A DNA stretch of 64,000 nt from Eutreptiella sp. 'Long Island Sound 2002' (taxonomy: Eukaryota; Protista; Euglenida): NCBI GenBank assembly GCA_964036045.1, contig OZ038378.1, forward strand, positions 58,218,001-58,282,000, written 5' to 3'. Positions 708-39,050 of this stretch are shown here, in pieces (position 1 is the first letter of the stretch; each line of letters begins with the position of its first letter). Position numbers and translations under genes: made by a program. The notes below the pieces were generated by a model. The model had not been told where the DNA came from. It was given only the letters and a program-made list of their open reading frames with translations, and did not search any database.

Positions 708-2860
708 ATATAGCCAATCTGCCCACTCCTGGGCCATTGCTGATTTTGTCCCCCGCCGTGCAGCGTTGAAGACCCCCCAAATGGCAGGGGTTATGTAGCC
801 ACGAGGCCCACTTGCAGGCCACTTCTGATTCTTGTCTCCGGCTCTGAGAGGTTGGGGATCCCCCAAACAGCAGGGGTTATGTAGCCACCAGTCCCGATTG
901 TGGGCCACTTCTGATCTTGTCTCCCACTTTGAAACGTTGGGGACCCCCTAGATGGCAGGGGTTATGTAGCCACCAGGCCCACTTGTGGGCCACTTCTGAT
1001 TTTGTCCGCCGCTTTGAAACGTTGGGGACCACCTCAGACGGCATGGGTCATGTCGACACGTGGCCCACTTGTGGGCCACTTCTAATTTTGTCCCCCCGCT
1101 GTGAGGAGTTGGGGACCCCCCAGACGGTAGTGCTTATGTGGTGCCACTTGTGCGCCACTTCTGGTTTTGTCCCTGGCTCTGAAGTGTTGGGGACCCCATA
1201 CTGCAAGGTTATGAAGCCACCAGTCCCAACTGTGGGCCAGGTCTGACTTTGTCCCCCCACATTCAAGTGGCGGGACCCCGCAGACGGCAGGGGTTATGTA
1301 CCCACTAGGCCCACTTCTCGGCCACTTCTGATTCGGTTGTCCGCTTTTAAGTGTTGGGGACCCCCTCCCCCCCCGGACAGCAAGGGTTATGTAGCCACCG
1401 GGCCCACTTGTGAGTCATTGCTGCAGCGGTCCCCCGCTTTGAAGAGCGGGGTACCTCCTAGAGTTGAGGTGTTATGTATCCAATCCGCCCACGTGTGGGC
1501 CACTTGTGAGTTGGTACCCCGCTCTCAAGCGTTGGGGACGCACGGCACTGGTTATGTAACCACCGGGCCCAATTTTGGGGTACTACTGACTTAATCCCCC
1601 GCTCTGAAGCCTTGCGGACCCCCTAGATTTTATGGATTATGTAGCCACCAAGCCCCATCGTGGGCAACTTCTCATTTGGTCCCTCGCTTTGAAGAGTTGG
1701 GGATCCCCTAGACGCCAAAGGTTATGGAATTAATTCGTACACTTGTGGGCCACTTCTGATTTTGTCCTCCACTCTCATGCGTTGGGCACGCCCCAAACGG
1801 CAACGGTTATGTAGCCACTAGGCCTACATGTGGGCCACTTCTGATTTCGTCCCCCACTCTGCAGCGATGCCCCCCCCCCCCCCCCAAACGGCAGTGGTTA
1901 TGTGGCCACCAAGCCCCCTTGTGGGCCTCTTGTGATTTTGTTCCCCGCCTTGAAGGTGTGGGGACCCCCAAGACGGCGGGGTTTGTGTAGCCACTAGGTC
2001 CACTTGTGGGGCGCTGCTGAATTTATCCGCCTCCGTTGAAGCGTTGGGGAGTGTTGTGCAGCCACCATGCCCATCTGTGAGCCTTTTCTGATTTTGTCCC
2101 CTGCTTTGAAGCATTGGGGACCTCCTACACGGCAGGGGTGATGTAGCCATTGACACTAGGCCCACTTATGAGGCTTTTCTGACCCCCCCCCCCTTGCCGC
2201 CCTGATGCGTTGTGGACCTTGAAGACGGCGGGGGTTGTGCAGCCACCGTGACCAATTGTAGGCCACTTCTGATTTTGTCCCCTAGCCTGAAGCGTAGGAT
2301 CTCCCGTAGACTGCAAGGGTTATGTAGCTACCACACCCACCTCCGGGTGCCTTGTCATTTTGTCTGCCCCTCTTGGTTTTGGGGGGTTGGGGACCCCCCA
2401 AATGGCACGAGTTATGTTACCACGAGTCCCACTTGTGGGGCAGGTTTGTTTTTGTCGTCGGCTTTGACGTGTTGGGGACCCTCCAGACGGCAAGGGTTAT
2501 GTAACAACCACGCCCACTTGTGGGCCACTTCTCATTTCCCCCCCCGCTTTGAAACGTTGGGGACCCCCCAAACCGCACGGGTCATGTAGCCACCAAGCCC
2601 AATTGTCGGCCACCTCTAATTTTGTTCCCTAGTGTGAAGCGTTGGCCACCCTCCAGATGGCAAGGGGTATGTAGCCACCAAGCCAACTTGTAGTCCACTT
2701 CTCAATTTGTTGCATGCTCCAAAGTGTTGGGAACCCCCTAGACGGTAGGGGTTGTGTAGCCATGAGGCCCCGTTGTTGGCGAGGTCTTATTTTTTGCCCC
2801 ACTGTGAAGCGTTGAGCACCAATATAGGGCAAGACTTATATCGCCACTAGCCCCAATTGT
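708..2860 (+). repeat. Sat85 tandem satellite block 1 (~85-86 bp monomer)
   Basis: Approximate consensus GGGTTATGTAGCCACCAGGCCCACTTGTGGGCCACTTCTGATTTTGTCCCCCGCTTTGAAGCGTTGGGGACCCCCAGACGGCAG. GTTATGTAGCC recurs at 790, 876 and 961. Confidence 0.95.
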
Positions 2861-3630
2861 GGGGGGGAGCCTTAAGCGCAGTGCGCGTGCAGTGCGCGCG
2901 CCGTGCGCGCGCAGTGCAACTATTTGGGCGTCTGGCCGTACTGGAGACCCATGCTTTGAGATCATGGGGGCATCATCGTTACCCTGTTGCGTAGGTTTTG
3001 ATGCTTTTTCCACATTGGGGATATAGCATTTTTGGAATTTCACCCAATTTCACCCATTTCCACCCTTTTTCACACTTTATCTCTATTTGCAAGGGCTATT
3101 TGGACCATTTCTTTGTGCAGGTTACTACCCATCTCTTTGAATTGTGCTATGCCTGAGATTCCAAGCCAAGTCGCATTTGAATTCGCCATCAAATTCCTCC
3201 AGCTGGTCGCATCAACTTACGAGGCTTGATGTGGCTGGTGAAGCGAAAGACCCGCCAGAGGGTGAGTAGTTCAACTCCGAATGATCTCGTAGCGGAAATT
3301 GCCTCCGCGGGGCTGTCGCCGCAACGGTTGTCATATTATGTCGACAAAGGTTTCGATGCACATACGAAAGGAGGTACCCCCGGCCGACTCCCCCTCTACA
3401 TTAGAGGATGTTGAGGGGGGCAACCAATACGCTGTTCATGGCTGTTCCAGATGTGCATGATGTGTGTTATGTGAAGGGAAGGTAGTTTGCAATTTTCTTG
3501 AGCTGGGGCAGTTTGGGTCACCTATTTCTAAGGGCGTTTCCAAGGGGCGTGCCTAGGGGCTCTTCTGGTGGAACATAGTCTAGCGCGCAGTGCGCGTGCA
3601 GTGCGCGCGCAATGCGCGCGCAGTGCAAGG
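2861..3630. mobile_element. ~770-bp insertion in Sat85 bounded by 44-bp GC-alternating direct repeats
   Basis: 2876-2919 and 3585-3628 are 42/44 identical (gcgcagtgcgcgtgcagtgcgcgcgc..tgcgcgcgcagtgcaa). Satellite resumes on both sides. No recognisable coding capacity. Confidence 0.5.
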
Positions 3631-4641
3631 ATTTCCCCTGGGCACCTTGTGATTTCGTTGCCCGCGCTGAAGCATTGGGGATCACCCACACGGGAGGGGC
3701 GAGGTAGCCACAAGGCCTAGTTGTAGGCCAAATGTGATGTTGTTCTCCCGCCCAAAGCATGGCGCAACCCGTAGTTGGCAGGTAATGTGTTGCCACTCGG
3801 CCCACTTGGGAGGTTTTTCTGATTTCGTACCCCGCCCTCAAGTGTTGTGCACCCCTCGGATGGCACGGGTTATGTAGCCATCAAGCCCACTTATGGGCCA
3901 CCTTTCCTTTGGTCCGTCGCCATGAAGCGTTGGGGACCCCTCACGCGGCCCGGGTTATATAGCCACCAGGCCCACTTGTGGGCTACTTGTGATTTTGTAC
4001 CCAGCTCTCAAGCGCTAGGGAGCCCTTGCAAGGCATGGGTTATGTAGCGACGGGGCCCACTTGTGGGCCGCTTTTCATGTTGTCCCCCACTGTGAAGCGT
4101 TGCGGACCCCACATATGGTAGGGGTTATGTTGCCACTAGGCCCCCTTGTGGGCTTCTTCTGATTTTGTCCCCCGCTAAGATGCGTTGGGTACCCCCAAGA
4201 CAACAGCAATTGTGTGCCACTAGGCCCACTTGTGTGCCACTTGCAGTGTTGGCCCCCCACCCTAAAGCGTTGGAGAACTCCGAAACGGCAGGTAATATTT
4301 AGCCACCAGGCCTAGTTGTGCGCAACTTCGGAATGTTTGCCCCGCGCTCAAGCATTGGGGAGCTCGCATACGACACAAGTTATGTAGCCACACTTGTGGG
4401 CCACTTTTGATATGGTCCCCCACCCTACAGTGTTGGGGACCATTCGCACGGCAGGAGTTACACAGCCATCAGGCCCACTTGTGGGCCACTTCTGCTCCCG
4501 TCCACAGCTTTGCACCGTTGGCACCCGCACACGGCAGGGGTTCCAATTGTGGGCCACTTTTGTCCCCTGCTCTAAAGTGTTGGGGACCCGCAAGATGGTT
4601 GTGGTCATGCCGCCACCAGCCCCACTTGTGGACCACTTTTG
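3630..4641 (+). repeat. Sat85 block 2
   Basis: Same monomer; ends mid-monomer at the transposon TIR. Confidence 0.93.
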
Positions 4642-6119
4642 CCCTAGAGACCTACGATAAATCCAATATGTTAAATTTTCAATTCTAATTTTTCAAAGGT
4701 GTAAAATCTTAAACCGATAAATTTTAACTTGTTAAATGTGAATACCTATTTTTTTCTAGAATTTAAAGTATTTGCGTGGTTAATTGCATGCGTATGCTAG
4801 GGTTTTGAGGTGGTTCAATGTGGTAGAATGTTGCCCAATGGGTTTGTAGAGATGTTGGATTGCCTAAGGGTTGGGTGTCCAACCCTTAGTCCTCTTCTAT
4901 GTGCCCACCGCCAACCCCACTCCATACCCCCTTTTCTCTTGTCTAGCACTTGTTATGCCTTTCCCTCGAGACACTATTCTCGAGCTTAGCATGACGCTTG
5001 TGTGTTTCAGTGGAGCCAAGAGTTTGCAGGACCCATTGGTCTCTCAACTCCTTGGTGAGTGGGTGGCTTCATCTCCCTTGGCCCGGGCCCGATGGTCCGA
5101 GGCCACGGACGTTGGCTACCCCTCCCTTATTCGTACTAAGTAAGTGGAGGCGGTGAAACAATACGCCCCCTTCCTTTTTCCCGCGCCCAATTTCATTGGG
5201 CTCCTCATGGACCTCAATGTCACAAAGACAAAGGGGTGCCGCCACCTCTCTCAGTTCATGACCCGGCGAGGAATTGACTATACGGCGGCTACAAGCCACA
5301 CCACCCATCCCAACACGGCAAGCCTTCTTGGACACATGGAAGGATATGGCTAAGCCGCTAGAGTTGCGCCCCCCCGTGAGCGTGGACGACCCGCCCGCTA
5401 TTGGCCGCAGCTGGCCCGTGCAATCATTGGCCCGCTACATTCAATCGCGTCCACCGCTAGTGGACACCATTGATTGGGACCGGCCCCTCACGTTTATTCA
5501 ATTGTGCACGGGGATGCCTACCCGTGTGCCGGTGGGAGTTGGACTTATCTATTGGGCTCCTCAACCACGGCAAACGGGGCCGCACACCCGCCTACTTGTG
5601 GGTCATCGGGATGGCGGTGTGCGCCGACAAAGACATGGCCGCTTTGGCCAGTATTTGGGCCAAGAACCTTCAGGTACTCAGCGCTTTTGTGTCGCAGTGA
5701 ATTCGGGTTGGCTTCTTTTCAAACTTCCTCGTTTAAAAGCGAAAAATTGCTTAAAATTCAAGCCGAACGAAGTTTGAAGTTGAAATTTAAACGAAAAGTG
5801 ACGCCCGGATATCAATGCACACACTCTTTTGTAGGTGTTACAGTCGATTCCCGGCTGCAAAAGTTTCTCTTGGGCATCCAGCTGGGTGCCTGTTGTGCTG
5901 GTTTTTGTGGGTGACCAGCCGTTTATTCGCCACCTCATTGGGGTCGCCACATCACCCCAAGTGGGGTCTATTTACAATATGGGGGTGTGGGACAAGGCGG
6001 CGGCGGCGTGGTTGCGGGTGGACGTGCGCTGGACTTGGGACAACGAGGCGGCGGCCCGTCACCAATATCAGGTGACGGGTCGGAGCTTGGACAATTGGGG
6101 GTGCATAGCGGAACCTCAC

Positions 6120-6894
6120 CACGGGGGCCGCTCCTGGTCGGGACCCGACCCCAAAGGAGGGGGGGGGGGGGCTCTAAGGACCCCAAAATTGTGGTACGGA
6201 ACAATGTGCTTTGTCGGCGCCGGAGATTTTCGTTTTAGGCATAGGGCAGGGGGAAAAATTTTTGTTCGACCCTATGTGTCTGTACTCAAAATACTCAAAA
6301 TTTCGTGGAGAATTCAAAAATGGCTCAAAAGCACAAAAAAGGATTTTGACCCTGACCCGGCCTCCGGGTCGGACCTTGGCTGATGGGAGCCTGTTTGAGC
6401 GTTAGCCAGGGCGGTCATTATGGGACGTGATTTTTTTTGTTAAGGTTCCCCACTTTGAAGCGGTGGGAACCCCTCAGGCTGCAAGGGTTATGTAGCCACC
6501 TTGCCCACTTTCGGGGCCACCTCTGATTCTGCCCCCCGCTCTGAAGCGGTGGGGATCCCCCAGGCGGCAGGGATTATGTAGCCACCTTGCCCACTTGGGG
6601 GCCACCTCTGATTCTGCCCCCCGCTCTGAAGCAGTGGGGATCCCCCAGGCGGCAGGGGTTATGTAGCAAGCTTGCCCACCTTTGGGGCCACCTCTGATTC
6701 TGTCCCCCGCACTGAAGCGGTGGGGACCCCCGAGGCGGCACGGGTTATGCAGCCACCTTGCCCACCTGTGGGTCACCACTGATTCTATCCCCCGCTCTGT
6801 TTGAGTCAACGAAGGGGGGGGGGGGGGGCTCTACAGCCCCCCAAACTGTCGAACACCTCTCGGGGTCACACATTGGCTGGCGGCGGCCCCCCTG
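6120..6894. mobile_element. Non-autonomous hAT-type MITE (775 bp) inserted in the transposase
   Basis: 8-bp TSD AACCTCAC at 6112-6119 and 6895-6902. TIRs cacgggggccgc and reverse complement caggggggccgc (11/12). CAGGG termini with an 8-bp TSD are hAT hallmarks. Confidence 0.85.
6445..6798 (+). repeat. ~4 homogeneous Sat85-variant monomers inside the hAT MITE
   Basis: (G/A)TTATG starts at 6487, 6573 and 6658 (85-86 bp period). The variant core ccttgcccactt.ggggccacctctgattctg is shared among the copies. Confidence 0.9.
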
Positions 6895-7665
6895 AACCTC
6901 ACATCGTGGTTGATCCGTGTTGGGTATTCCTATGAATCCTCCATTGTTGCATGGCCATTGGGCGGCTGCAGGTCGCTTTTGTTGACGCACGCCTGGAGTC
7001 ATTCCCCAAGGAGAATGCGGAGGCCGTGCAACGGTTATTGTACCGGGTACGCACAGGGGTGAAGCTAGGTGCCACCGCCGCACCCGATGGGGAGGAGGCT
7101 AGGGCTCTCTTCCTTGCATGGGAGGAGAAAGGCCCACTATCAGACTATTGGCCTACGCGCCGGAGGACCCCGAAAGGCAAGCCGTTGTTGCCATGAGGGA
7201 TCCCCTTTGGGACATGTTCAGCGACCCGCCCTTTCTCAATGACCGGGGGGCATCTGCTGTTGCGCGGCAGTACCTTGCACATTGATGCAAAGCCGCCTGC
7301 CAGTCCAACTACCTCCTCTACCTAGAGGAGGATTTGACCACATCGGTGGCTAATGCGGAACGTTTGGAGGTAGGGTTGGGGGCGGTTTGTGCGGATGTGG
7401 TAGAAAGCGTAAATGCAATTTTAAAACGGGCGTGCAACGATCACACGGCCCAGGGGCGGGGTGATGCCGGGGGCCACATCCCTGGGAAGAGAGGCGGAGG
7501 TAGTTTCACAAGTATGGGAACGGTGTTTTCGGAAATTTGATCTACCCCTAAGGACCCAAGGTAGCCCCCATGTGGCCCCATGTACAATGGCCACACTCAT
7601 GTCTAACCATAGCCCCCCACCCGTGTCCCTTTCCCTTGCACCCCCAGCTCTTGTTAGCCCTATCC

Positions 7666-10036
7666 ATGGACCCCGCCACAATGGAGGCGTTGATGGAGAA
7701 GATGTTCGAGAAGATGAGCGACAAAGTGATATGTGCTTGGGTGTGTTTGCTTGCGTAGGACGCGATATCCGACTCAGTAATTTTCGTTTAAATTTTAACG
7801 GGGGCGTCGCTTTTTTTCGTTCATTTGTAACACCGGTGGTTGTTTAACATTTAGAATTTAAGCTAAAAACGAAGTGTTAAAAATTAAACCAAATTTTTTA
7901 GACCCAGGTTAATTTTTGCATTTGTTCTCTTTTGCAGATGCGACAAATGGAGGACCGGCTGTAGCAGCGTGCAGCACTTCTTGGGGGAGCAGTTCCAGCT
8001 GCTCTAGCTCCTCCAGCAGCTCTAGCAGCTGCAACAGCCGGCGGTCCCCAACCCCGGTGGGGGAGGGGGGGGGGGCGCCGTCCGTCGCCGCCTCCTTTGA
8101 GGAATGGCGCCGGCCCAAGGAGGAGCGGTGCCGCGAGAAGGAGCAGAGACGGCGAAGGAGGAGGAGGAGAGGAGGGCAAAGGAGGAGAGGAGGTCCAACC
8201 AGTAACGGGGGGGGGGGGCAGAGCAGGAGGAGGTGGTGGTGCCAGAGGCCGGGGATGAGGATGGGGAGGGGGATGAGGATGGGGAGGGGGATGAGGTCTA
8301 GGTGCAGCTCCCCCCCAACCCCCTATTTTCCTCCTTCCCGAGTGGCTGCAAAAGTCCTCGAACAGGGCTCGGGGCCACACCAACCAATTTTTCTGACTCG
8401 AGCAAGGGTCAATATACCCTTCATTGGGTTATGCGCCGACTTTTCCGGTGCCTAATTAGGAAACATTCGGAGGGCAAGGGGGAGCGGCAGAGGGATGCTG
8501 CCAAAGGGGGCGCCGGGCGCTGGCAGCCAGTGCCGGGCGATCCCATGTCCCCCTTGCCCGAGCGCATCAGCTCAGGGTCCTTATCGGCCCTGAACCTGCC
8601 GTCCGACCCCCTGGGGGACGGGTGTGGCACGGGCCACTACCTGGTGTGCCTGAGGCACTAGGTAGCCCTTGGCTGGTGCTAACAGTGGCGGCAGGGCACG
8701 TCGGTGCAGTTTGCACCGATGTGCTGTGCCCTGATGTCCCTGCCCACCCCCCCCTACAACCCCGCTGCCCAGCACACCCACGAGGGGCTGGTGCCTGGGC
8801 CGCACACAACCCGCGGCTTGGCTCCCATCACTCGGACGGCCCCCCCAGCGGCCACCACCGCCAACACCACCAACGCCGCCGATCCAGTAGAGGCCCCCGC
8901 CCCGCCTCAAGGTTCAGGCAGGCGATGGGGGTGCTGCATGCTCTGGGGTGCCCAAAATTTCAAAAGCTATGTGTGTGTATGCGTGTGTTTGCGTTTGTTA
9001 AATTTTTAGGGCGCTTTGTTTAAAAGTTTTGGTTTCATTTTTAAAGTTTTGATCTCTGCTTCAAAAATTAAAAATGATGTTATAAATTAAAGCAGATAAT
9101 TTAAAAAAATCGTCCAACAAATTCAGTTTTTCCCCCGGACCACGGCCACCGCCTGCTTTGTTGCAGGTCAAGGAGGTGGCGGTCTGCGGAGACGATGTGC
9201 GCCCCATCCGTGTTGTTTGGCGCGACAAGGACGGGGAGCGGAGCGTGGGGTTAGGGGGGCTCCACAAGCTCCTCGCCCATGACCCCGCGCTTGGGCTTGC
9301 CATGCTCCGCGGCTTGAAGGAGTGGGAGCACGGCCGCCAGTGCGCGGAGGTGTGGGGTCCCTGGAGGCCCTACAAGCCCACTTCGAGGGCACACTTTGGG
9401 GAGGTAGGGTGGTTGGGGTGTGACGATACAGCGCTTTGTCAATGGATGGGTGGCGCAGAGGGAAGGGAGGTGAAGGAAGAAAGGGAGGGGGCAAGCACCA
9501 CCACCACCACCCCCCCCCTCCAAGCCCTAGCCACCCCCCCCCCCCCAAAGCGGAAGCGGTTGGAGTGGGACTCAGACGCCGAGTGCGACAACCCCGCCTC
9601 TTCCTCTTCGTCGTCCTCCGCCAAAGACACCCCCCCCCCCGAACAGGAACCCCCCCCAAAGTCAAAGGCCGTCCCTGCCTCAAAAGAGAAGGGGCGGGAG
9701 AAGAAGGCGAAGGTCGGTGGGAAAGAAGCGGGGGCGGCGGAGAAGGAGGCAGGGGGGGGGGGACCCCCCGATCCCCTCATGGAAACCTCCGCCCACGTCT
9801 CATACGGGGGCGGGGTAGAGGTGGGCACCGTTACCGGTGTCCACACCCGCAAGAGCGGAGTTGTTTGGGTGAGATACCCAAACAACCCCAACCTCTATGA
9901 GGTGGAGCGCCAGCTCATCTTCGGCACCGCCGAAGCCGCGGAGGCGCACCTCCAGAAGGTGCGCAAGGGCAAGACGCCCACCACCAACCCCCCCCCCCCC
10001 CGCCCCCCAACAAAGCCGGCTAACCACCCCGACTAA
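7666..10036 (+). pseudogene. Accessory gene 2 of transposon copy 1 (unknown function; multi-exon)
   Basis: Exon MDPATMEALMEKMFEKMSDK (7666-7725), intron 7726-7937 (GT..AG), then MRQMEDRL* and disrupted middle exons. The last exon 9167-10036 (acceptor ttgcAG|) is an intact 290-codon frame homologous to the minus-strand gene at 55.1-55.9 kb. Confidence 0.65.
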
Positions 10037-10209
10037 CCCCCGAGAAAACCCTCAACCCAACCCAAATACCCCCGGTAACCTACCTAACCCCCCAAGCGAA
10101 ACCCAAGCTACCTCGGCACTATGGGACCCGGAAACGGGCTCCCGGAAGGTTTAACACTGCAACAATGGCCTAGAATGGCCAAGCACATGAGCCGCAAAGG
10201 CTAAAGGGT

Positions 10210-10520
10210 ATGCCTCTCCCCTTTGTGAACGGCCCTGAATGGAACTTTTGAATGAGAATGCGAACCTGAGTGGAAACCGGCGAAATCGGCGGGTGACGCG
10301 AATGCGCACGAGGATGCGAATGTGAATTCGAATCTATTTTTTTTGCGAATGTAGCCTAAATTAGGCCAGATGCGAAATACAGGTCGGGTCTTTTGAATTT
10401 TTATGATTTTTTGGCGAAGTAAGCATAGCAAGCGGGCACAAAGACAAGGTACCACGGGCAAAACGGTCAAAAAATGCACAAAGTGGGCATACTCATTCAA
10501 AAGTTCCATTCACAGGGGGT
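10210..10520. mobile_element. MITE-like element with a 21-bp perfect inverted repeat; relative at 37870-38114
   Basis: tgaatggaacttttgaatgag (10236-10256) versus ctcattcaaaagttccattca (10492-10512). Internal gggcacaaagaca.gg.a.cacgggcaaaacgg is shared with ~38030-38060. Confidence 0.6.
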
Positions 10521-10886
10521 ACATTCTATGTGTTTCTGTGCTTCTGTAGGGAGGTTTGATTTTTGGAAAGTTTGTATACATTTTGTTGGTTTAAATTATA
10601 ATCCCGGCGACGCATAATATTTAAAAGCTAAAAATTGTAAACCAAAAATTAAACTCAAATTTCAAAGCCGAGAGCCCTTTTAATATTTTTACACATCAAG
10701 ACGGGTGAACCCCCCCCCCAAACCAAGGCGTAAAATGGTTCACACACACACACAAGGCACCCCGTAGGGGTGAATTTTTTCCCAAGCGACGCCCCTAATC
10801 CCCCTGCAAAAAGTGCATACTTTGGTTTAATCAATTGATTTTTGGCCAAAAATTAAAAATAATGGATTTAATTTGGGTCTCTTGGA

Positions 10887-13143
10887 TGCTTTTGTCCCCC
10901 GTCCTCAAGCGTTGGGGACCCCTCATATGGTAGGGGTAAGCTAGCCACCAAGCCCACTTGTGTACGGCTTCTAATCTTGTCCCCTGCTCCGTTGTGGGCG
11001 CTGCAGCCAGCAGTGATTGTATTGCCCCCAGGCCCACTTGTGGGCTATTTCTGATTTGTTCCTTTGTCTTGAAGCAATGGGGACTAAAGGGAGAGGGCAT
11101 GTGTTCTGTAGGCACGAGGCCCAATTGTGGGCCACCTGTGACTTTGTTCCCTGGCCTAAAGCGTTGGGGACCCCCCGGCCAACATGGGCCATCTATCCCC
11201 CAAGCCCACTTGTAAGCAACTTCTGATTTCTCCCCAGCTCTGAAGCGGTGGGGACACCCCAAACGGCAGGGGTTATGTAGCCACCACACCCACTTGTGGG
11301 CAACGTCCGATTTTGTCCATCGGTCTGCATTTGTGGAGTGATCCTAGACGGCAGGGGATATATAGCTGCTGCGCCCACTTGTGACCCACCTCTAATTTTG
11401 TGCCCCGACATGAAGTGCTCGGGACCCCTAGAGGGTAGGGATGATGTAGCCTCTAGGCCCACTTGTGGAGCACTTCTGATTTTGTATTCCCGCTCAAAGC
11501 GTTCGGCACCCCCTAGACAGCCGGTAATATCTAGCCACTAAGCCCACTTGTGAGCAACTTCATATTTTGACCCTTGCCTTCAAGCATTGGGGAGCTCTCA
11601 AACGACATGGGTTATGTAGCCACACGCCCCACTTTTGCGCCACTTTCGATATTGTCCTCCGCCCCGAAGCGTTGCGACCACTCGCACGGCAGTAGTTATG
11701 TAGCCACTAGGCCGACTTGTGGGCCACTTCTGATTTTGTCCACCGCTTCACACCGTTTGGACCCCCCACACGGCAGGGGTTACGCCGCTGCCAGGCCCAA
11801 TTGTGGGCCACGTCTGATTTTGTCCCCCGCTCTAAAGCGTTGTGGAACCCCAAGATGGTAGTGGTCATGTAGCCACTAGGTCCACTTGTGGGCCACTCTG
11901 ATTCTTTTTCTGCCCTCAAGCGTTGGGCACCTCCCTCACGGCAGGGGTAAGCTAGCCACCATGCCCACTTGGGCACCACTGTTTATTTTCCCCCGTGCTC
12001 CGTTGTGGAGGTTGCAGCCGGCAGCCGTTATGTTGCCCCCAAGCCCACCTGTGGGCCTTTTCTGATTTGGTCCCCCATCTTGAAGCAATGGGGACCAAAG
12101 AGAGAGGGCATGGGTCACGTAGCCACGAGGCCCAATTGTGGGCCACCTCTGGTTTTGTCCCCTGGCTCTAACGTTGGAAACCCCCCAGACGACATAGGCC
12201 ATTTACCCCCCAAGCTCACTTGCAAGCGACTTCCAATCCCCCCCCCCCCCGCTTTGAAGCTTTGGGGATCGCCCAGGCGGCAGGGGTTATTTAACCACTT
12301 GGCTGGGCAATTTCTTCTCCACCACCACGATGCTTCGGGAACCCCCCAAACGGCAGGGGTTATGTAGCCACCACACGCACTTGTGGGCAACTTCTGATTT
12401 TGTCCATCCGACTGAAGTGGTGGAGTGCTCCCAAACGGCAGGGGTATGTAGCCCCTGCGCCCACTTGTGAGCCACCTCTGATTTTGTGCCCCAGTGTGAG
12501 GTTTTGGGGAGGCCTAGAGAGTAAGGGTTCTATAGCCACCAAGCCCACTTATGGGCCACATTTGATTTCGTATTCGCGCCTTGAAGTGTTGGTCACCCCC
12601 CAGAATGCAGGGTCATATCATCATCAGGCCCACTTATGGGCCCCTTCTGATTTTGTGCTCCGCCTTGAAGCGTTGGCGAGCCCTAGACTGCATGGCTTAT
12701 AAGGCCACTAGGCCTACTTGTAGGCCATTTTTGATTTTGTCCCTCCACGGTCAAGCATTGCGGACCCCGAAGACGGCTTGGGCCATGTAACACGCACACC
12801 TTCTTCTGGGCCAGTTGTGAATTTGTCCTTCACTTTGAACCTCTTCGGACCGTTAGACGGGAGATTACTTGTGGGCCACTACTGATTTTGTCGCCCGCCG
12901 TGAAGCATTGGGGGGCACCCGGACGAGAAGCGTTATGTAGCCACAAAGCCTACATGTGGCCCGTTTGTGATCTTGCCCCCCGTCCCGAAACCTTAGGGCC
13001 GGTGCAGATGGGAGCGCTTGTGTAGCCGCCAAGCACACTTGTGGGCCATTTCCAATTGGTCGGCCACCCGAAGCGTTGGGGACCCGCCAAACGGCATAGG
13101 TACGGTCGCCACCAGGCCCCCTTGTTGGCCACTTGTGATACCC
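10887..13143 (+). repeat. Sat85 block 3
   Basis: Same monomer. An ~1.01-kb higher-order duplication is visible (ggggtaagctagccacca at 10933 and 11944). Confidence 0.93.
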
Positions 13144-15960: not shown

Positions 15961-18900
15961 GTTCAGGACCACCACACGGTGAGGATTATGTCGCCACGAG
16001 ACCCTATCGTGCCGCACGTTTGAGTTTTTGCGCCGTGTTGAAGTGTTAGGGATGCCTCAGATGGCAAGGGTTATGTACCCATCGTGCCCTTTCGTGGGCC
16101 ACTTCTGATTTTGTTCCCCAATGAAAAGTGTGGTGACCCCTTGACAGCAAGGGTGATGTCGCCAGTAGGCCCAAATGGGGGCCACCGCGAATCTTGTTCC
16201 CATCCTGAAGCGTTGGGGACCCCCATAGACGATAGCAACTATGTAGCCGCTAGGCCCACTTGTGGGCCATTTCTGATTTTGTTCCTCGCTCTTAAGAGGT
16301 GCGGAGCCCTAGACGTTAGGGGTTAGAAAGCCAATCTGCCCAATGGTGAGCTTACTTTGATTTTGTCCCCCGCTCTAAAGCGTTGCGGACCCTCCGGACG
16401 GTGGGGGTTATGTAGCCACCGGACGCACTTGTGGGCCACTTCCAATTTGGTCCTCTTTTGCGAAGCGTTCGGACCCCTCTGACAACAGGGGTTATGAAGG
16501 CCCCAAGCCCACTTCTTGGCCCGTGCTGATTTTAGCCCCCGCTGTGATGCGTTGGGGACCCCCATAGGGCAATGGTTTTGTAGCCACCACACCCACTTGT
16601 AAGCCACTTCCGATTTTGTCTCCTGACTTCAAGCGCTAGGGATCCTAGACTGCAGGGGTTATGTAGCCACTAGGCTCTCTTGTGGGCTACTTCTGACTTG
16701 GTCTTGCGCCCTAAAGCGTTGGGGACCGCTCACACGGCAGCATTTATGTAGCCACTAGGCCCACTTATTGGCTACTTCTGATTTTGTCACCTTCTCTGAA
16801 ACGTTCGAGTCCCCCTGGAAAGCAGGAGTGATGCATCTACCGAGCCGACTTGTGGGGCACTTCTGATCTCTCCCCTGCTCTTAAGCGTTGGGGACCTCTC
16901 GGATAATAGATGTTATGTAGCCACTAGATCCACCTTGTATGCCACCCGTGGTTTTGTCCCATGCCTTGAAGCCTTTGGGTCCCCATACACGGCGGGGGTT
17001 ATGCAGGCACCAGACCCACTTGTGGGCCACTACTGATTTTGTTTTCCATTGTGTTGCGTTGGGGAGCCCCGAGACGGCAATCATTATGCAGCCACTGCAC
17101 CCAGGTGTGGGCCATGTTATGTAGGCACTAGGCCCCCTCCTGCGTCATTTCCCATTTCGTCTCCCGCCTGGAACGGTTGGAAACCACCCCGCGGTAGTGG
17201 TTATGTAGCCACAAGGCCTGCTTGTGGGCCAGTACTGATTTTGGCCCCCCACTATAAAGCATTGTGGACCCCAAAGACGGCCTCGGTTATGTAACCATGA
17301 GACCTTCTTCCGGTTTTGCGTTTGTTCTCCACTTTGAAGCTCTTGGGTCCCTACGGTAGGAGGGATTTCGTAGGTATGACACCCACTTGTGGGCCACTGC
17401 TGATTTTGTCGCCCGCCTTGAAGCATTGGGGAGCACCCGGACGAGAAGCGTTATGCAGCCACGAAGCCTACATGTGGCCCGTTTGTGATCTTGCCCCCCG
17501 TCCCGAAGCCTTAGGCCGGTGCAGATGGGAGCGCTTGTGTAGCCGCCAAGCACAACTGTGGGCCATTTCCAATTGGTCGGCCACCCGAAGCGTCGCGGAC
17601 CCGCCAAACGGCATGGGTAATGTCGCCACCAGGCCCCCTTGTTGGCCACTTGTGATACCCGCTTCCCCACTCCAAAGCGTTCAGGACCACCACACGGTGA
17701 GGATTATGTCGCCACGAGACCCTATCGTGCCGCACGTTTGAGTTTTTGCGCCGTGTTGAAGTGTTAGGGATGCCTCAGATGGCAAGGGCCATGTACCCAT
17801 CGGGCCCTTTCGTGGGCCACTTCTGATTTTGTTCCCCAATGAAAAGTGTTGTCACCCCTCGACGGCAAGGGTCATGTCGCCAGTAGGCCCGAATGGGGGC
17901 CACCCCGAATCTTGTTCCCATCCTGAAGCGTTGGGGACCCCCATAGACAATAGCAATTATTAGCCACCAGGCCCACTTGTGGACCATTTCTGATTTGGTC
18001 CCCTGCCCTGAAGAGTTGGGGCCCCTAGACGGCAGGGGTTAGAAAGCCAATCTGCCCAATGGTGAGCATGCTCTGATTTTGTCCCTTGCTCTAAAGCGTT
18101 GGGGACCCTCCGGACGGCGGGGGTCATGTAGCCACCGGGCGCACTGGTGGGCCACTTCTGATTGGGTTCTCTTTTGCGAAGCGCTCGGACCCCCGTGACA
18201 ACACAGGTTATGTAGGCACCAAGCCCACTTTTGGGTCTGTGCAGATTTCAGCCCCCGCTGTGATGCTTTGGGGACTCCGTATAGGGCAATGGTTATGTAG
18301 CCACCAGACCCACTTGTAAGCCACTTCCGATTTTGTCTCCCGACTTCAAGCGCTTGGTATCTCCCAGACGGCAGGGGTTATGTAGCCACTAGGCTCTCTT
18401 GTGGGCTACCTCTGACTTGGTCTCCCGCCCTAAAGCGTTGGGGACCGCTCACACGGCAGCATTTATGTAGCCATCAGGCCCACTTGTTGGCTACTTCTGA
18501 TTTTGTTACGTGCTTTGAATCGTTTGAGGCCTCCTAGGTAGTAGGAGTTATGCATCTATCGAGCCCACTTGTGGGGTGCTTCTGATTTCTCCGCTGCTCT
18601 TAAGCGCTGGGGACCCCTCAGTTGGTAGGTGTTATGTAGCCACTAGACCCACTTTGTATGCCACCCGTGGTTTTGTCCCACGCCTTAAATCGTTTTGGGC
18701 CCCGTACACGGCAAGGGTTTTGCAGACACCAGGCCCACTTGTGGGCCATTGCTGATTTTTTTCGCGTTGTGTTGCATTGGGGAGCCCTGAGACGGCAATC
18801 ATTATGTAGCCACTGCACCTAGGTGTGTGCCACTTCTTATTTTGTCTTCTGCCTTGAAGCGCGGGTGACCTCCTTGATGGCATGGGTTATTTAGGTACTC

Positions 18901-19580
18901 GGCTTTCTTGTGGGTCATTTCTGATTTCATCTCCCGCTTTGAAGCGTTGGGAAGGTTATGTAGCCACAAGGGTTGCTTGTGGGCCATTACTAATTTTGCC
19001 CCCCTCCTTGAAGCATTGGATCCCCCATAGGGTTGCGGTTATGTAGCTACCAGACTCACTTGGTGGCTACCCCCAATTTTGTCACCCGCTGTGAAGCTTT
19101 GAGCCTCCCCAGACGGCAATAGCGATGTGGCCGTTGGGCCAACTTGTCGGCCACTTTTGATTTTCTCCCTTGCTATGAAGAATTGGGGACCCCTCAGATA
19201 GCATGCCTTCTATAGCCACTAGGCCCACCTTTAGACCACCTCCGATTTAGTGCCCGGCTCTAAAGCTTTGGGGACCGCACAGAGCGCAGGGGTTACGCGG
19301 GCTCCAAGCCCACTTTTGGGCTAGTTCTGATTTTGTTCCCGCACTTTGAAGCATTGGATACCCCACATATGGCGGATGTTATGTAGCCACCGGGCCCAAT
19401 TTTGCGCCACTGCTCATTTTGGCCCCCCCCACTCTCAAGGGTTGCGGACCCCGCAGACGACGAGGATAGTGGAGCCATCTGGCCCACTTGTCGGACACCT
19501 CTGATTTTGTCCGTTGCCGTGAAGCGTCGGGGACCACCCCAACGGCAAGGGTTATGTAGCCACCAGCCCCACTTGTGGGC
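15961..19580 (+). repeat. Sat85 block 4 (contains the ~1.72-kb higher-order repeat)
   Basis: ggttagaaagccaatctgcccaatggtgag at 16321 and 18037; gagacggcaatcattatg at 17071 and 18789. Confidence 0.95.
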
Positions 19581-20004: not shown

Positions 20005-23000
20005 CTTGTGGGCCACTGTTGATTTTGTGCTCCGCTTTCAACCTTTGCCGACCCCTCAAACGGCAAGGGCTATATAGCCACCACGCCCGTTTGTGGGCGA
20101 CTTCCAATTTGTGATTTTGTCCCCCGCTATGAAGCAGTAGGGACCCCAGATGGGACGGGTTATGTAGCCACCACATCCGACTTCTAAATTGCCCCCTACC
20201 CTAAAGTGTTGGGGACCACTCCGACGGCAAGGGTTATGTAGCCACCAGGCGCACTTGTGGGTCACTTTTGATGTTGTACTCCCCTTTGAAGCGTTGGTGA
20301 CCCCTTAGATGGCAGAGGCTATATAGCCACGAGGCCCAAATGTGGGTTACTTTTAGTATGTGATTTTGTCCCCCGCTCTGAAGCATTAGGTATCCCAGAT
20401 GGGACGGGCTATGTAGCCACCACACCCAATTGCGGGCGACTTTTGAATTGTCCCCTGACCCAAAGCGTTCAAGGCCACCCCTACAGCAGGGTTTACGTGA
20501 CCACTAGGCCCACTTGTGGGCCACTTTCGATTTTGTGCTCCGCTTTGAAGCACTGGGGCCCCTTCAGACGGCAAGAATTATGTAGCCACCGGGCCCACTT
20601 GTGGTCCAATTCTGATTTGGTCCCCCGCTTTGAACCACTTCGGCACCTCAGGTGGCAGGGGTTATATAGCCATCAAGCCCCCCTTGTGGGCCATTGCGAA
20701 TTTTGTCCACCGCTTTGACGTTTTGGGGACCCCCCCCCCCCCGCGACGTTAGGGGTTATCTAGCAACCAGATCCAATCGTGGGCCACTTGTGATTTTGTC
20801 CCCCGCCCTCAAGCATTGGGGACCTCCCATACGGTAGGTGTGAGCTCGCCACCAAGGCCACTTGTGTACAACATTTAAGTTTGTCCCCTGTTCCGCAACG
20901 TTGGGGACACTGCAGCCGGCAATGGGTATTTTGCCACCAAGCCCACTTGTGGGGCATTTCTGGTTTTTTTCTACCGCTCCAAAGCGTTGGAGATCAAAGA
21001 GACATGGCATGGGCCATGTAGCCACGAGGCCCAACAGTGGGCCACCTTTGATTTTGTCCCCCGGATGTAAAGCGTTGGGGGCACCAAACACGACATGGGT
21101 TATGTACCCACCAGTCCCACTTGAGCGACTTCTGGTTTTGTCCCCCACTCTGAAGCGTTGAGGACGCCCCAGGCTGTAGGGGTGATATAGCCACTTGGCC
21201 CAATTGTGGGCCACTTCTAATTTTGTCCCCATCCCCGAAAGCTTCGGGGACCCACCAAACGGCAGGGGTTATGTAGCCACCACACCCGTTTGTGGGCAAC
21301 TTGTGATGTTGTCCATCGGTCTAAAGTGTTGGCGTCCTCCCCAACGGCAGGGGGTATGTAGCCACTAGGCCCACTTGTGAGCCACCTGTGATTTTGTGCC
21401 ACAGTGTGAAGTGTTGGGACCCCTAGAGGGCAAGGGTTATGGAGCCACCAGGCCCACGTGTGGGCCACTTCAAATTTCGTCCCCCCGCTCAGAAGCATCG
21501 GGGACCCCCCAAACGGAAGGCTTTACGAAATCATGAGGCCCACTTGTGCGCCACCTCTGATTTTGTCCCCCGCTTTGAAGCTTTGGGGAACGCAAAGATG
21601 GTAGGGGTTTTCAGCCAACAGGTGCACTTGTGGGCCACTTCCCTTTTTTATTTCGATGTGAAGACCCTCGAGACGGCATGGTTTATGTAGCCATTTGGCC
21701 CACTTTTGAGCCACTTCTGATTTGCCCCCCCCCCCCCCCTCGCGTGCAGTACCCCCTAGAGGGCAAGGCTTATGTAGTCTAAGGCGTTAGAGACCCCCAT
21801 ACTATAGGGGTTATGTAGCCAACTGGACCAGTTGTTGGCCACTTCTAATTTTGTCCCCCGCCTTGAAGAGGTGAGGACCCCCGGTACGTAGGGATTATGT
21901 AGCCACTAGGGCCACTTGCAGGCCGCTTCTGATTTTGTCCCCTACCTTGCAGTGTTGGGGACCCCCTACATGGCAGGGATTATGTAGCCACTAGGCCCAC
22001 TTGTCGGCCTATTCTGATTTTATCCTGCTCTGAAGGCTACTAGTGCGCCACTTCTGATTTGGGCCCTTGCCGGGAAGCATTGGGCCACCCCCACACGGCC
22101 GAGGTTTTGTCGCCACCGTGCTCACTTGTGGGCTAGTGTTGATGTTATCTTGCGCCCTGAAGCGATGGGGACCCCAGAATAGCAGGGGTTATGTAGCCGC
22201 CATGCCCGATTTTGGGTCACTTCTGATTTTGTCCCCGCGCTTTAAGGGGTCGGGGATACTCCATACGGCCGGGGCTATGTACCCACCAAGCCCATTTGTG
22301 GGCCATTTGTGATTTTGTCCACCGCTCTGAAGCGTTGGGGACCCCTTAGACGTAAGGGGTTATGTAGCCACCGTGCCCACTTGTGGGCCACTCCTGTTTT
22401 TGTCTCTTGCTTTGAAGCGTTGTGGACCCCCCGGACAGCAGGGGTTAGGTAACCACCAAGCCCACTTGTGGGCCCGTTCTGATTTTCAACCCCGCTTTGA
22501 AGCGTTGGGGAGCCCCCAGGCGGCACGTTTTATATAGCCACTAGGCCCGATTGTAGGCCCTTTCTTATTTTGTTCCCCGGCCCCGAAGCGTCGCGGAACC
22601 CCTAGACATAGGGGTTATGTAGCCACCATGCCTACTTGGGGGCCAGTGATGATTTTCTCTCCCGTTTCGAAGCGTTGCCCCCCCCCCCCCCATGACTGCA
22701 GGGGTTATGGAGCCACCGGGCCCCTTTGTGGGCCACTGCTGATTTTATCCCTTGCTCGGAAGCGTTGGGGACCCCTACACTACCGTGGTCGTCTTGCCAC
22801 TATACCCCCTTGTGGGTCACTTTGATTTTTGTCCTCCTGCTCTTGAGCATTGGGGATCCCCCAAGCTGCAAGGGTGGTGTACCCAATCTGCCATATTGAA
22901 GGCCCCTACTAATCCTCCCCCCAGGTCCGAATTTTTGGGGAGCCGTCATGCGGCAAGGGTTATGTAGCCACCATCCCCGATTTAGGGTGCCTTCTGGTTT

Positions 23001-25825
23001 TGTCCCCGCGCTTTGCGGCGCTGGGGATACGCCATACGGTAGGGGCTATGAACCCACCAGGCCCATTTGTGGGCCATTTGGGATTCTGTCCTCCGCCCTG
23101 AAGCGTTGGGGACCCCCTAGACATAAGGGGTTATGTAGCCACCATGTGCACTTGTGGGCCACTCCTGTTTTTGTCTTTTGCTTTGAAGCGTTGTGGACCC
23201 CCCGGACGGCAGGTGTTGCATACCACCAAGCCCCTCTGTGGGCCCCTTCTGATTTTCACCCCCACTTTGAAGCGTTGGGGACCCCCTAGACGGCACGGTT
23301 TATATGGCCAATTGGCCCGATTGTAGGCCATTTCTTATTTTGTTTCCCGCTCCAAAGCGTTTGGGACCCTCGAGTCGGCAGGGTTTGTGTACCCGGCAGG
23401 CCCACCAATGGGCCACTTCTGATTTTGTTCCCCCGCCCGAAGTGTTGGGAACCCCTAGTTGGCAGGTGTTATGTAGCCACCATGCCCACTTGGGGGCCAG
23501 TGATGATTTTGTCTCCCGTGTTGAAGCGTTGGGTACCCCCCCATGAGGGCAGGGGTTATGGAGCCGCCGGGCCCACTTCTGGGCCACTGCTTAATTTATC
23601 CCCCGCTCGGGCGTTGGGGACCCCCGACACGGCCAGCGTCATGTTGCCACTAGGCCCCCCTGTGGGTCACGTCTAGTTTTGTCCTCCTGCTCTTGAGCAT
23701 TGGGGACCTCTCAAACAACAAGGGTGGCGTACCCAATGTGCCAACTTGAAGGCCCCTACCAAACCCCACCCCCCCGGTCCGAATTGTTGGGGAGCCCCCA
23801 TATGGCTGGGGTTATGTAGCCATCATGCTTAATTTTGGGTCATTTTTGATTTTGTCCCCACGCTTTGAGGCGTTGGAGATACGCCATATGGTAGGGGCTA
23901 TGAACCCACGAGGCCCATTTGTGGGCCATTTGTGATTTTGTCCTCCGCTCCGAAGCGTTGGGGACCCCCTAGACATAAGGGGTTATGTAGCCACCATGCG
24001 CACTTGTGGGCCACTCTTGTTTTTGTCTCTTGCTTTGAAGCGTTGTGGACCCCCCGGACGGCACGGGTTAGGTAACCACCAAGCGCACTTGTGGGCCCCT
24101 TCTGATTTTAACCTCACCTTTGAAGCGTTGAGGACCCCCCAGGCGGCATTGGGCCCGATTGTAGGCCATTTCTTGTTTTGTTCCCCGCTCCAAAGTGTTT
24201 GGGACCCTCCAGACCGCATGGTTTATGTACCCACCACGCCCACCAGTGGGCCACTTCTGATTTTGTCCCCCCGCCCCGAAGCGTTGGGGAACTCCTAGTT
24301 GAAAGGGGTTATATAGCCACCATGCCCACTTGGGGGCAAGTAATGAAATTGTCTCGTGTTTCGAAGCGTTGGGTACCCCCCCCCCACGAGGGCAGGGGTT
24401 ATGGAGCCACCGGGCCCACTTGTGGGCCACTGCTAATTTTGTTGCCCGCTCGGAAGCGTTGGGGACACCCTCCACAGCCGGGGTCATCTAGCCACTATGC
24501 CCCCTTGTGGGTCACTTCGAATTTTGTCCTCCTGCTTTTGAGCATTGGGGACCTCCCAAGCAGCGGGGTTGGCATACCCACCCTTCCAACGTGAAAGACC
24601 CTACGAATCCCCCCCCCCCCCGGTCTGAAGTGTTGGGGAGGCGCCATATGGCAGGGCTTATGTAGCGACCACTTGTGGGCCCATTCCGTGTTTGCCTCCC
24701 GCTCTCACGTTGGAGATCTCCCAAACGGCAGGGGCTATGTACCCACTAGGCCCATTTGTGGGCCATTTGTGATTTTGTTCCCTTACGTGAAGCTTTGGCG
24801 ACCCCTCGGGCATCAAGGGTTATCCAGCTACCGGGCCCACTTATGGCCCACTTTTGATTTTGTCCCCCAACTCTTAAGTGTTGGGGCACCCCCGACGGCC
24901 GGGGTTCCGGAGCCAATGCGCCAACTTGAAGGACGACAACGATCCCCCCCCCCCCCGCTTGGAAGTGATGGTGACCCCCCCCGGACAACGGGGGCTATGT
25001 ACCCATTGGCCCCACTTGTGGGCCTCTTGTGATTTTGTTCTCGCCCTGAGGCGTTGGGGACCCCCCACATGGCAGGGGTTATTTAGCCAGCCGGCCCACT
25101 TGTGGGCCGCCTCTTATTTTGTCCCCCCGCATTGAAGCGTTGTTATGTGGCCAATCCCCCCACTCGTGGGCCCCTTCTGATTCTGTCCCTTGCCTTGAAA
25201 CATTGGAGACCCCCCACACGGCAAGGGTTATGTAGCCACGAGGCCCACTTGTGTGACACTTCTGATTTCTCGCCCCCGCTTTGATGCGTTGGGGATCCCC
25301 CGGACGCTAGGCGTTATGTAGCCACCGCGCCCACTTTTGGGCCTATGTTGCCCCCCCCCCCCCCCGCATTCCGGACCCCTCAGGCGGTAGGGGTTATGTA
25401 GGTTATCATTTTGTGCCCTACCCTGAAGCGTTGGGGATCCCCAAGATGGCAAGGATTATGTGGCCAACAGACCCATTTGGGGGCCACTGCTGATTTTTCC
25501 CCCTGCTCCCCGCTCTGAAGCGCTGGGGCCCCTCAAATGGCATGGTTTATGTAGCCAGCAAGCCCACTTATGCCACTCCTGATTTTGTCTCCCACCTTGA
25601 AGCGTTGGGGACCCCCACACAAGGCGGGGGTTGTCTAGCCACCAAGCCCGCTTGTGGGCTACATCTGATTTTGTCCCCCGCTCAGAAGCGTTGGGGACCC
25701 CCTAGACGGCAAGGAGTATATAGCTAGCACGCCCACTTGTGGGCCACTTCTGATTTTTTCCCCCGCTCTCGAGTGTTGAGGACCCCCAAACAGACGGTAG
25801 GGGTCATGTAGCCAGCAGGCCCAAA
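20005..25825 (+). repeat. Sat85 block 5 (contains ~9-10-mer higher-order repeats)
   Basis: Marker ggggctatg.accca...cccatttgtgggccattt at 22271, 23042, 23894 and 24731. Confidence 0.95.
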
Positions 25826-36649: not shown

Positions 36650-39050
36650 AAGCCAAGGTGCCTCAACACCCCCAAGCGCTGGTTTGCGCATCACCGGCAA
36701 AAACACGGACTGCCTTAGAACAGCCATCGCTCACAACGAATGCCACCGTGAGCTTGGCGTGGCACCATTTTGTGTTCTCTTGCCGTGCCCCATTGCATGC
36801 TTCCTCTCATAGGTCCCCATGGAGGCAGTTGCCCCACAAGGTACACCGTCCAAGATGTCGGTGCCGCATGACACAGAAACCGAAGAATTGAAGATGCCGC
36901 AAGACACAGAAGCCCGGGTTTGTGCGTAGCTCGCGAGAGCGCGGACCGCCATAGAATAGGCATCCCCCACCAAGGATGCCATTGTGAGACCCGAGTCCTA
37001 TGTCATGCGGCACTGGGACCTTCGGGGCTTCAGCTTGTGGGCCACCATGGGGACCTATGAGGGGAGGCATGGAATCGGGCACAGCAGGACAACACACAAT
37101 TGGGCGTCTCGGGTCTCACGATGGCATTCTTGGTGAGCGATGGTTGTATTACGGCAATCCGCGATTTTGCCGGCAATGCACAGAGGGCTTGTTTGTCTTG
37201 CAGCACCATTGGTTCTTCAAGTTGTGTGTCCTGCAGACACCTTTCAGGGGTTCGGCTTGTGGGGCAAATGCCTTCTTGGGGACCTATGAGAAGAGGCATG
37301 GAATGGGGCACGGCAAGAGAGCACAAAATGGGGCCACTCGGGTCGCTCGATGGAATTCTGCGTGAGTGATGGCCGTTCTACAACAGTCCACGCTCTCGCC
37401 AGCGACACACAAATCAGGGTTTTCTATGTCTTGCAACGCCGACACCTCTGGTTCTTTGGCCGCTGTGTCCTCCGGGACCCAAACCTTCGTGGGTCTAGCT
37501 TGTTGGGCGAGTGCCTCCGTGAGGACCTACGAGAGGAGGCATGGAATGGGGCACGGCAAGAGAACAAAAAATGGGGCCAGCGGGGTCTCATGATGCCATG
37601 GTTGGTGAGCGATGGCTGTTCTACGGCAATGTGCGCTCTTGCCGGCGATGCACAAACGTGGGCATTTGTGTAATGCGGCACCGATACCTCCACTTCCTGC
37701 GCTTCTGTGTCCGGCAGCACTGACACTTTCGGGGGCTCAACTTGTCGGGTGATTGCCTTCTCGGGGACCTTCGAGAGGAGGCATGGAATTCGGGAACGGC
37801 AAGAGAACACAGCATGCGGCCACGCGGGTCTCAAGATGGCATTCTTGTTCAGTGATGGCTGCTCTATGGATATTACATGCGAATGCGAACGAGACATGCA
37901 TACGACAATGCCTACATTCGCGCGAATTCAACTTTTTTTCTGCAAAACTCAGCACTGTTAACACCCACTTGCACTGCATTTTGTGCATTCCCAATATTTT
38001 CATTTTTGGGGAAATAAGCACCGCGAAGGGCACAAAGACACGGAAACACGGGCAAAACGGGCTGAAAGTAAGCGCCGAGCGTATGTTCATTCAAAATTGC
38101 GGTGCGCAAAGGGTACATGGAATGGGGCACGGCAAGAGAACACCGATTGGGGCCACTCGGTTCTCACAATGGCATCCTTGGTGAGCGATGGTTGTTCTGC
38201 GGCAGTCCACGATCTCGCCGGCAATGCACAAACTAGGGCTTCTGTATCTTGCGGCAACAACACCTTGGGTTCTTTGGCTTCTATGTTTTGCGGCACCAAG
38301 ATGTTCGGTGGTTCAGCTTGTGGGGCGGCCGCCTCCTTGGGGACACGTGAGAGGAAGCACGGAATGTGACATGGCACGAGAACACAAAATGGGGTCACTC
38401 GGGTCTCACGATGGCATCCTTGGTGGGTGATGCCTGTTTTACGGCAGCCCGTGCTGTCGCTGGCAATGCACAGACTTGGGCTTCTGTGTCTTGCAGCACT
38501 TTCGGTTCTCCCGCTTCTGTGTCTTGCGGCACCAACACTTTTGGGAGTTCAACTTTTGGGGCGACTGCCTCCTTTGGCACCTCCCAGAGGAGGCATGGAA
38601 TGGGACACGGCAAGAGGACACAATCTGGGGCCTCTTGGGTCTCATGATGGCATTCTTGGTGAGCGATGGATGTTTTCTGCGGCAGTCTGCGCGCTCACCA
38701 TCAATGCACAAACCTGAGCTTCTTTGTCTTGCGGCAGCTTCGGTTCTTTGGCTTCTGTGTCTGGCGGCACCAAGCTTCGGTGGTTCACCTTGTGGGGCGA
38801 TTACCCTGATAGGGACCTATGAGAAGGGGCATAGAATGGGGCACGGCAAGAGAACTCAAAATCGAGCGATTCCGGTCTCACGACGGCAGCCTTAGTGAGC
38901 GATGGTTGTTCTATGGCAGTCTGCATTCTCAACGGGGAAGAAACACACAGGCACATATGTGGGCTTTTGTGTGCTACGGCAACAAAATCTTCGGTTCTTC
39001 GGCTTCCGTGTCTTGCGACAGCTTCGGCTCTCCGGTTACTGTGTCCGGGG
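36650..39050. repeat. ~240-bp tandem satellite with an internal inversion
   Basis: gcatggaat marker at 37067, 37296, 37539, 37781, 38115, 38357, 38593 and 38829 on +. 36650-36995 is the reverse complement of the monomer. Confidence 0.88.
37870..38114. mobile_element. MITE-like insertion in the 240-bp satellite, related to 10210-10520
   Basis: Shares gcgaatgcgaa, gggcacaaagaca..cacgggcaaaacgg and a terminal gggta; breaks the 240-bp period. Confidence 0.55.

Follow-up and report, generated by a model that had tools for sequence, protein, structure and literature searches.

What does a long open exon encode when it lies at the 3' side of a transposon whose transposase is broken? The question arises within a 64,000-nucleotide stretch of the 2.28-Gb genome of Eutreptiella sp. 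'Long Island Sound 2002', hereafter the window, in which an initial annotation had described an accessory protein of two discrete domains. On balance, we favour the reading that a partner gene of several exons ends in this exon, that its protein has at least three conserved blocks, with a predicted Tudor/chromo-barrel fold in the C-terminal one (C block), and that it would serve as a nuclear adaptor of transposition. The features of the locus are collected in Table 1.

Table 1. Features of element A and of copy 2 (window coordinates)
Feature	Position	Strand	Description
Element A	4642-10886	+	Decayed copy of a ~5.2-kb DNA transposon within an 85-bp satellite array
5' terminal inverted repeat	4642-4669	+	CCCTAGAGACC...TAAATCCAATAT; flanking dinucleotide TG
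Transposase remnants	5304-7610	+	Several exons/frames; GDAYP-type, GGDxPF-type and ESxNxxLKR-type motifs
Nested insertion 1	6120-6893		Splits a transposase exon; gap versus L031, L032 and L035; absent from L031
Putative first exon	7666-7728	+	MDPATMEALMEKMFEKMSDK; ATG-initiated, opens MDPATMEALMEK; frame best conserved versus subfamily A2
Putative second exon	7938-8360	+	RQMEDRLQ after ttttgcag acceptor, then low-complexity; in-frame TAG 7962-7964
M-block exon	8389-8966	+	WVMRRL...HYLVCL.HWVALGWC...YEGLV...FRQAMG
Intron	8967-9166	+	Phase 0; donor CT here, GTATGTG in L031; acceptor ttgttgcag
Last exon of the putative partner gene	9167-10036	+	Open, 289 codons and stop
N block	9167-9466	+	Core of 3 strands and 2 helices (residues 3-62), then Trp-rich extension
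Linker	9467-9781	+	Low-complexity Pro/Lys/Ser/acidic; KRKR nuclear-localisation-like motif; pLDDT <50
C block	9782-9970	+	Predicted four-strand Tudor/chromo-barrel-like barrel and C-terminal helix
Nested insertion 2	10212-10516		26-nt inverted ends; absent from L031
3' terminal inverted repeat	10859-10886	+	...GGTCTCTTGGA; family consensus ...GGTCTCTAGGG; flanking dinucleotide TG
Copy 2 (family B)	55100-59900	-	Collinear tblastx chain; order transposase, then partner gene
C block of copy 2	55154-55400	-	Frameshift splits the block across two frames
N block of copy 2	55670-55855	-	tblastn match to copy 1

The exon belongs to element A (copy 1), which aligns over its full length with a near-intact genomic copy, L031, two nested insertions excepted. 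Since L031 spans element A minus these insertions, the canonical element measures about 5.2 kb. The 5' terminus of element A recurs in L031 and in L035, and the 3' end of the family is conserved in 20 or more copies. A 2-bp target duplication (TG, TA and CA) was found in each of the three copies with both flanks available. Nested insertion 2 is probably a small non-autonomous element; it includes a 117-bp stretch with 72% identity to window positions 38003-38118. The flanks of L031 (3590-3629 and 8835-8880 in reverse-complemented coordinates) are inverted repeats of each other, and hence either the target of L031 is a palindrome or L031 is nested in another element with inverted repeats. Arrays of the ~85-bp satellite occupy window positions 708-4640, 10887-13139, 15966-19580 and 20005-25824, with 63-77% identity between blocks, and element A sits within one of them. 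In a crude test that has no genome-wide background, satellite sequence was found at only 2 of 26 family-A 3' flanks, which gives no support to satellite-targeted insertion.

When the exon was compared with all six reading frames of the genome, 146 scored matches were obtained, at 45-77% identity and mostly with stops; corresponding searches gave 150 scored matches for a second family (B) and 130 for a further one (D). The transposon is present in this 2.28-Gb protist genome in hundreds of copies at least. Copy 2 of the window represents family B, which is the older of families A and B, and L031 and both window copies share one gene order. In the N block, CGDDVRPIRVVW...DPALGL...GLKEW of copy 1 aligns with CGEDPRGVRVEW...DPNMAL...GLGMW of copy 2. 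As a single pair, the two reach a tblastn E value of 1e-3, and intact family-B members align with the copy-1 block at E values down to 5e-12. For the C block, intact family-B versions were found in L056 and L061. The motifs GTV(T/S), WV and L(I/L)F.T.E.AEAHL (LIFxTxEAAEAHL in copy 1) are common to both families. In a profile-profile comparison of the A and B C blocks, significance is confined to the last 22 columns (P 4.7e-5, probability 68%), which correspond to the last strand and the helix, because family B carries a long Lys/Gly-rich insertion (~30 residues) between C-block strands; outside these columns, the likeness consists of collinear motifs across that insertion. At the DNA level, the C block is the most conserved part of the aligned stretch (window ~7660-10300).

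Several statements of the initial annotation can be judged from these comparisons. It had described a fully open frame at 9167-10036, which is indeed present (289 codons and a stop; counted from 9158 to 10036 on the plus strand, 292 codons are open). Its Pro/Lys/acidic linker is likewise there, with Ser added to the composition and disorder predicted, and the length and frame of this linker differ among copies. The two blocks that it had reported as conserved with copy 2 both recur there and in hundreds of other genomic copies. For the N block, the single-pair E value is given above; for the C block, the comparison of the family profiles is significant over the last 22 columns only. The description was incomplete, as a third conserved block lies upstream.

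Two further observations concern the distribution of these exons. Family D, a third large family (G000:C3:29858590-29859510 and 129 other places), has a more diverged N block (..IACRDRD..LHRLLAT.P..GL), and its Trp-rich extension is conserved with that of family A. In L010 (1030-1510) and in protein P0004, internal deletions fuse the GGDxPF exon of the transposase almost directly to the last partner exon, and this 3' exon is kept in many defective copies.

The third block (M block, window ~8389-8966) was revealed by comparison with subfamily A2 (L025, L026, L028 and L035). Identity to A2 is 51-58% in one frame versus 40-46% in the other two, and family B has a homologous M block immediately upstream of its N block. 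The M exon ends at a donor of the form AAAAG/GTATGTG in family A and GGCACG/GTATGT in family B. The acceptor, a pyrimidine tract followed by CAG, is conserved in both families, and in both the junction between the M exon and the last exon is in phase 0. Further upstream, the putative first exon and the RQMEDRLQ exon are both conserved with subfamily A2. These comparisons indicate that the last exon is part of a multi-exon, spliced partner gene downstream of the transposase, and this gene appears to be separate from the transposase gene. Searches and fold models used individual exons; the M block had no match to Pfam or to PDB sequences. A candidate zinc-binding motif in the M block of family A (H..C..H..C) was rejected, as its positions are not kept in family B.

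Is the window copy itself maintained? The initial annotation had noted that the last exon is open in spite of the broken transposase, a contrast that could suggest maintenance. This suggestion is not borne out. Upstream of the last exon, the partner gene carries a TAG (8659-8661), a TAA (8680-8682) and a 1-nt deletion near 8899, and its splice donor is changed from GT to CT at 8967-8968. Hence, the partner gene is dead in the window copy. Relative to the family majority, the last exon has changed at 64 of 867 sites. When neutral substitution to the same extent is simulated, the frame stays open in about 14% of trials; of the thirty best genomic matches, about one in four is likewise open. Given the upstream defects and this neutral expectation, the open frame says nothing on selection at the window copy, and selection on that copy was rejected as an explanation of it.

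Constraint is seen at the level of the family. The ratio of non-synonymous to synonymous change among copies, a check that the initial annotation had proposed, separates the two blocks. For the N block, pN/pS is 0.50 pooled and 0.22 versus subfamily A2, below the shifted control frames (1.0 and 1.2). For the C block, the value of 0.71 is inseparable from that of one control frame (0.68). In addition, the protein blocks can still be aligned between families that have diverged beyond alignment at the DNA level. This, together with the pooled N-block ratio, argues for long-term constraint on the family.

The transposase remnants align collinearly, as protein, with copy 2, subfamily A2 and family B. 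Their exons had no match in Pfam or among PDB sequences, the RAG1 and Transib structures included. Target duplications are 2-4 bp in the CMC (CACTA-Mirage-Chapaev) superfamily and 5 bp in Transib. The element has a 2-bp duplication (three copies) and CCC... termini, a combination that would fit CMC better than Transib.

Two oddities of the transposase frame deserve mention. Just before the ILHCC/ILHFT motif, both window copies contain an in-frame TGA (6933-6935; near 58530 on the minus strand in copy 2), at a position occupied by Cys in L031, L035, L006 and L024 of family A and in L051, L063 and L042 of family B. Two independent TGA changes at one codon are odd. Just after the ESxN motif, a poly-G frameshift is common to the family-A window copy (7440-7475), L031 (4270-4290) and L004/L032, and the frame of subfamily A2 is unbroken at that site (...HTARGGGMAGATSTEREAEVV...). 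The frameshift may have been inherited as a defect by a non-autonomous lineage, may stem from an assembly error in the homopolymer, or may reflect programmed slippage.

Structure prediction and structural searches were run for each block of the last exon. The AlphaFold2 model of the whole exon was built from an alignment of families A and B, that is, of one transposon group. In it, the N block forms three strands and two helices (pLDDT 68-79) and is joined to the C block by a disordered linker. The C block is modelled as four strands (residues 208-213, 216-225, 232-236 and 243-247) followed by a helix (255-268), with pLDDT 60-75. In Foldseek, its top matches are MRG15, MRG701, PHF1, TDRD3 and SMN (E 0.01-0.2, probability ~1.0). 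An all-against-representatives search with VIA gave the RBBP1 Tudor domain (Z 7.8), MRG701 (Z 7.5, 68 of 71 residues aligned) and MRG15 (Z 7.1, 74 of 83 residues aligned). When VIA was applied to the Foldseek candidates, the PHF1 Tudor domain reached Z 7.5 with an rmsd of 1.6 A over 50 residues; MSL3 reached Z 6.7, with 71-73 residues aligned. All Z values are below 8, hence middling, and the tool warns that such scores can reflect merely a common arrangement; KOW domains of SPT5 are nearly equal matches (Z 6.8). A language-model search, an independent but weak lead, pointed to a Tudor family (score 0.79).

At the sequence level, no Royal-family match was found in Pfam for any of 25 C-block members, nor any match to PDB sequences, each at E up to 10. 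Families A and B both keep aromatic residues at Y/W213, W234, Y/F244 and F252, which may line a cage for methyl-lysine or methyl-arginine or may belong to the core. Overall, the models reasonably support a C block that would fold as an SH3-like barrel of the Tudor/chromo-barrel type with a C-terminal helix. The initial annotation had guessed a small Tudor/SH3-type barrel followed by a helix, and the modelled fold, whose top matches are all Tudor or chromo-barrel domains, agrees with that guess.

The N block has no such clear relatives. The profile search suggested at the outset was carried out with an N-block profile (35 sequences) against 1.84 billion representative proteins. It returned 108 matches, all of them short GC-rich fragment ORFs and including more diverged subfamilies; these appear to be further copies from the same group of transposons. 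Among the 1.84 billion representatives, neither a host protein nor a named family was recovered. One of the fragments, P0140, is 100% identical to a locus in the Eutreptiella genome, and a word-index protein search gave 37 matches, all unnamed ENA fragments. A match of the N-block profile to the CV39L lectin (E 1.8e-5) was rejected: it is the sum of seven individually insignificant propeller beta-hairpins.

A second N-block model, from 74 sequences, has pLDDT 79-92 at residues 11-50 and no match in Foldseek. In a wide structural search, canonical chromodomains ranked first, among them SUV39H1 (Z 4.3), Rhino (Z 4.2) and Chd1 (Z 4.1). About 10 of 50 structural rows were chromo-type, and all Z values were below 5. 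The predicted topology, a three-stranded sheet then a helix, weakly resembles that of a chromodomain. Only one aromatic residue, W18, is among the nearly invariant positions, so that a chromodomain-type aromatic cage is not evident, and none of the 74 members matches the Pfam Chromo family. The idea that the N and C blocks arose by internal duplication was also discarded (hhalign probability 3.7%); the two are unrelated.

How might such a protein work? In active elements, the partner protein would carry the M block in the exon that precedes the last one, and the N block, the disordered linker and the C block in the last exon. It would be a nuclear protein that serves the transposition machinery as an adaptor. 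The barrel, and perhaps also the chromo-like N block, may bind chromatin or nucleic acid, and this binding would tether or regulate the transposase. We infer this adaptor/reader role from the predicted fold, the basic linker with its KRKR motif and the precedent of reader domains on transposons.

Other accounts of the same exons have to be weighed. The barrel may be a KOW or integrase-CTD-type module for nucleic-acid binding or oligomerisation, rather than a histone reader, in a TnpA-like factor that binds DNA and brings the element ends together. Besides SPT5, NusG (Z 6.2) and the C-terminal domain of RSV integrase (Z 5.7) score near the Tudor domains, the linker is basic, the position in a spliced unit 3' of the transposase is like that of TnpA in En/Spm, and the subterminal regions of L031 contain four occurrences of the motif AAATTTTAA. 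However, the window copy does not preserve the subterminal repeats, which are AT-rich and few in number, Pfam gives no match to a CACTA accessory family, and it is with chromo-barrels that the structural alignments are best and most complete. We regard a TnpA-like factor as rather unlikely. A different account makes the blocks the C-terminal part of the transposase itself, spliced on, so that a single gene would end in a reader-like tail, as chromoviral integrases end in a chromodomain. In every family, the partner exons are on the same strand as the transposase exons and directly downstream of them. Subfamily A2 speaks against a single gene: after the ESxN region, its transposase frame enters poorly conserved sequence and meets a stop, and a different frame, from an ATG (MDP...), takes over as the conserved one. 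A tail of the transposase is in our judgement unlikely.

The exon may also be a passenger with no role in transposition, either a captured host fragment or a relic. Many internal-deletion derivatives (P0004, L010) simply keep the 3' part of the element. Yet at least four diverged families or subfamilies keep the blocks in one order and conserve them as protein but not as DNA, the N-block pN/pS is below 1, and this block has no host-gene relative among the 1.84 billion representatives; a mere passenger is very improbable. At the other extreme, the protein may be a true reader of a chromatin mark that directs or licenses a transposase of the RAG1/CMC type, in a protist two-component system working like RAG1 and RAG2 and built from a Tudor/chromo-barrel together with two domains whose relatives were detected within the transposon group only. 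We hold this reading to be quite unlikely.

The nuclear adaptor that we favour can be set beside several known systems. As in PIF/Harbinger, where a Myb-like ORF2 protein aids the transposase, this would be a two-gene DNA transposon; the partner differs in that it has no Myb/SANT domain, and the transposase is different. With RAG1-RAG2 and Transib/ProtoRAG, the element would share a DDE transposase that travels with a partner gene. RAG2 carries a PHD finger, a reader of a histone mark, which ties cutting to H3K4me3. In contrast, the partner protein is without Kelch propeller or PHD finger (no Pfam match; the models are a small alpha/beta fold and a barrel), and the element differs from Transib by its target duplication (2 bp versus 5 bp) and by the absence of sequence matches to RAG1/Transib structures. 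The likeness to En/Spm (CACTA) is one of layout: a second protein downstream of the transposase, introns and short target duplications. The partner nevertheless differs from TnpA, with no match to the CACTA protein families of Pfam and no clear arrays of subterminal motifs. The initial annotation had recognised neither TnpA nor any named accessory protein of transposable elements, and its view holds for Pfam, CACTA families included, which matches none of the blocks.

Among protein domains, the predicted four-stranded SH3-like barrel of the C block is like those of the Royal family (MRG15/MRG701/MSL3; PHF1, SMN and TDRD3), and the C-terminal helix packs on the barrel in the model as it does in chromo-barrels. 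The C block departs from this family by the lack of a sequence-profile match and by the insertion of family B. A chromatin reader of its own can allow a transposon to select landing sites or to evade silencing, and most known chromatin readers of transposons are chromodomains fused to the integrases of retrotransposons. If the barrel of the C block reads a histone mark, the family would provide a natural two-component system in which to study chromatin-guided DNA transposition.

We found no published description of this abundant transposon group in the literature that was searched. Chromatin-reader domains on transposons as such are known, and include the chromodomains of chromoviral integrases, the chromo-hAT element of a sponge and the Tudor domain of Gypsy-10_Ec32 in Ectocarpus (bioRxiv 10.1101/2021.11.30.470311; PMC12477816). 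The Tudor domain on a Gypsy element was termed, in 2025, the first Tudor on any transposable element (PMC12477816). The element described here is like these captured readers in that a mobile element encodes a module of Royal-family type. It differs from them in that the module would lie on an apparently separate, spliced partner of a DNA transposon, unfused to integrase or transposase, and is accompanied by two further blocks without known relatives. The dead copy of the partner gene in the window is a variant on a known theme, that of transposons carrying chromatin-reader-like domains.
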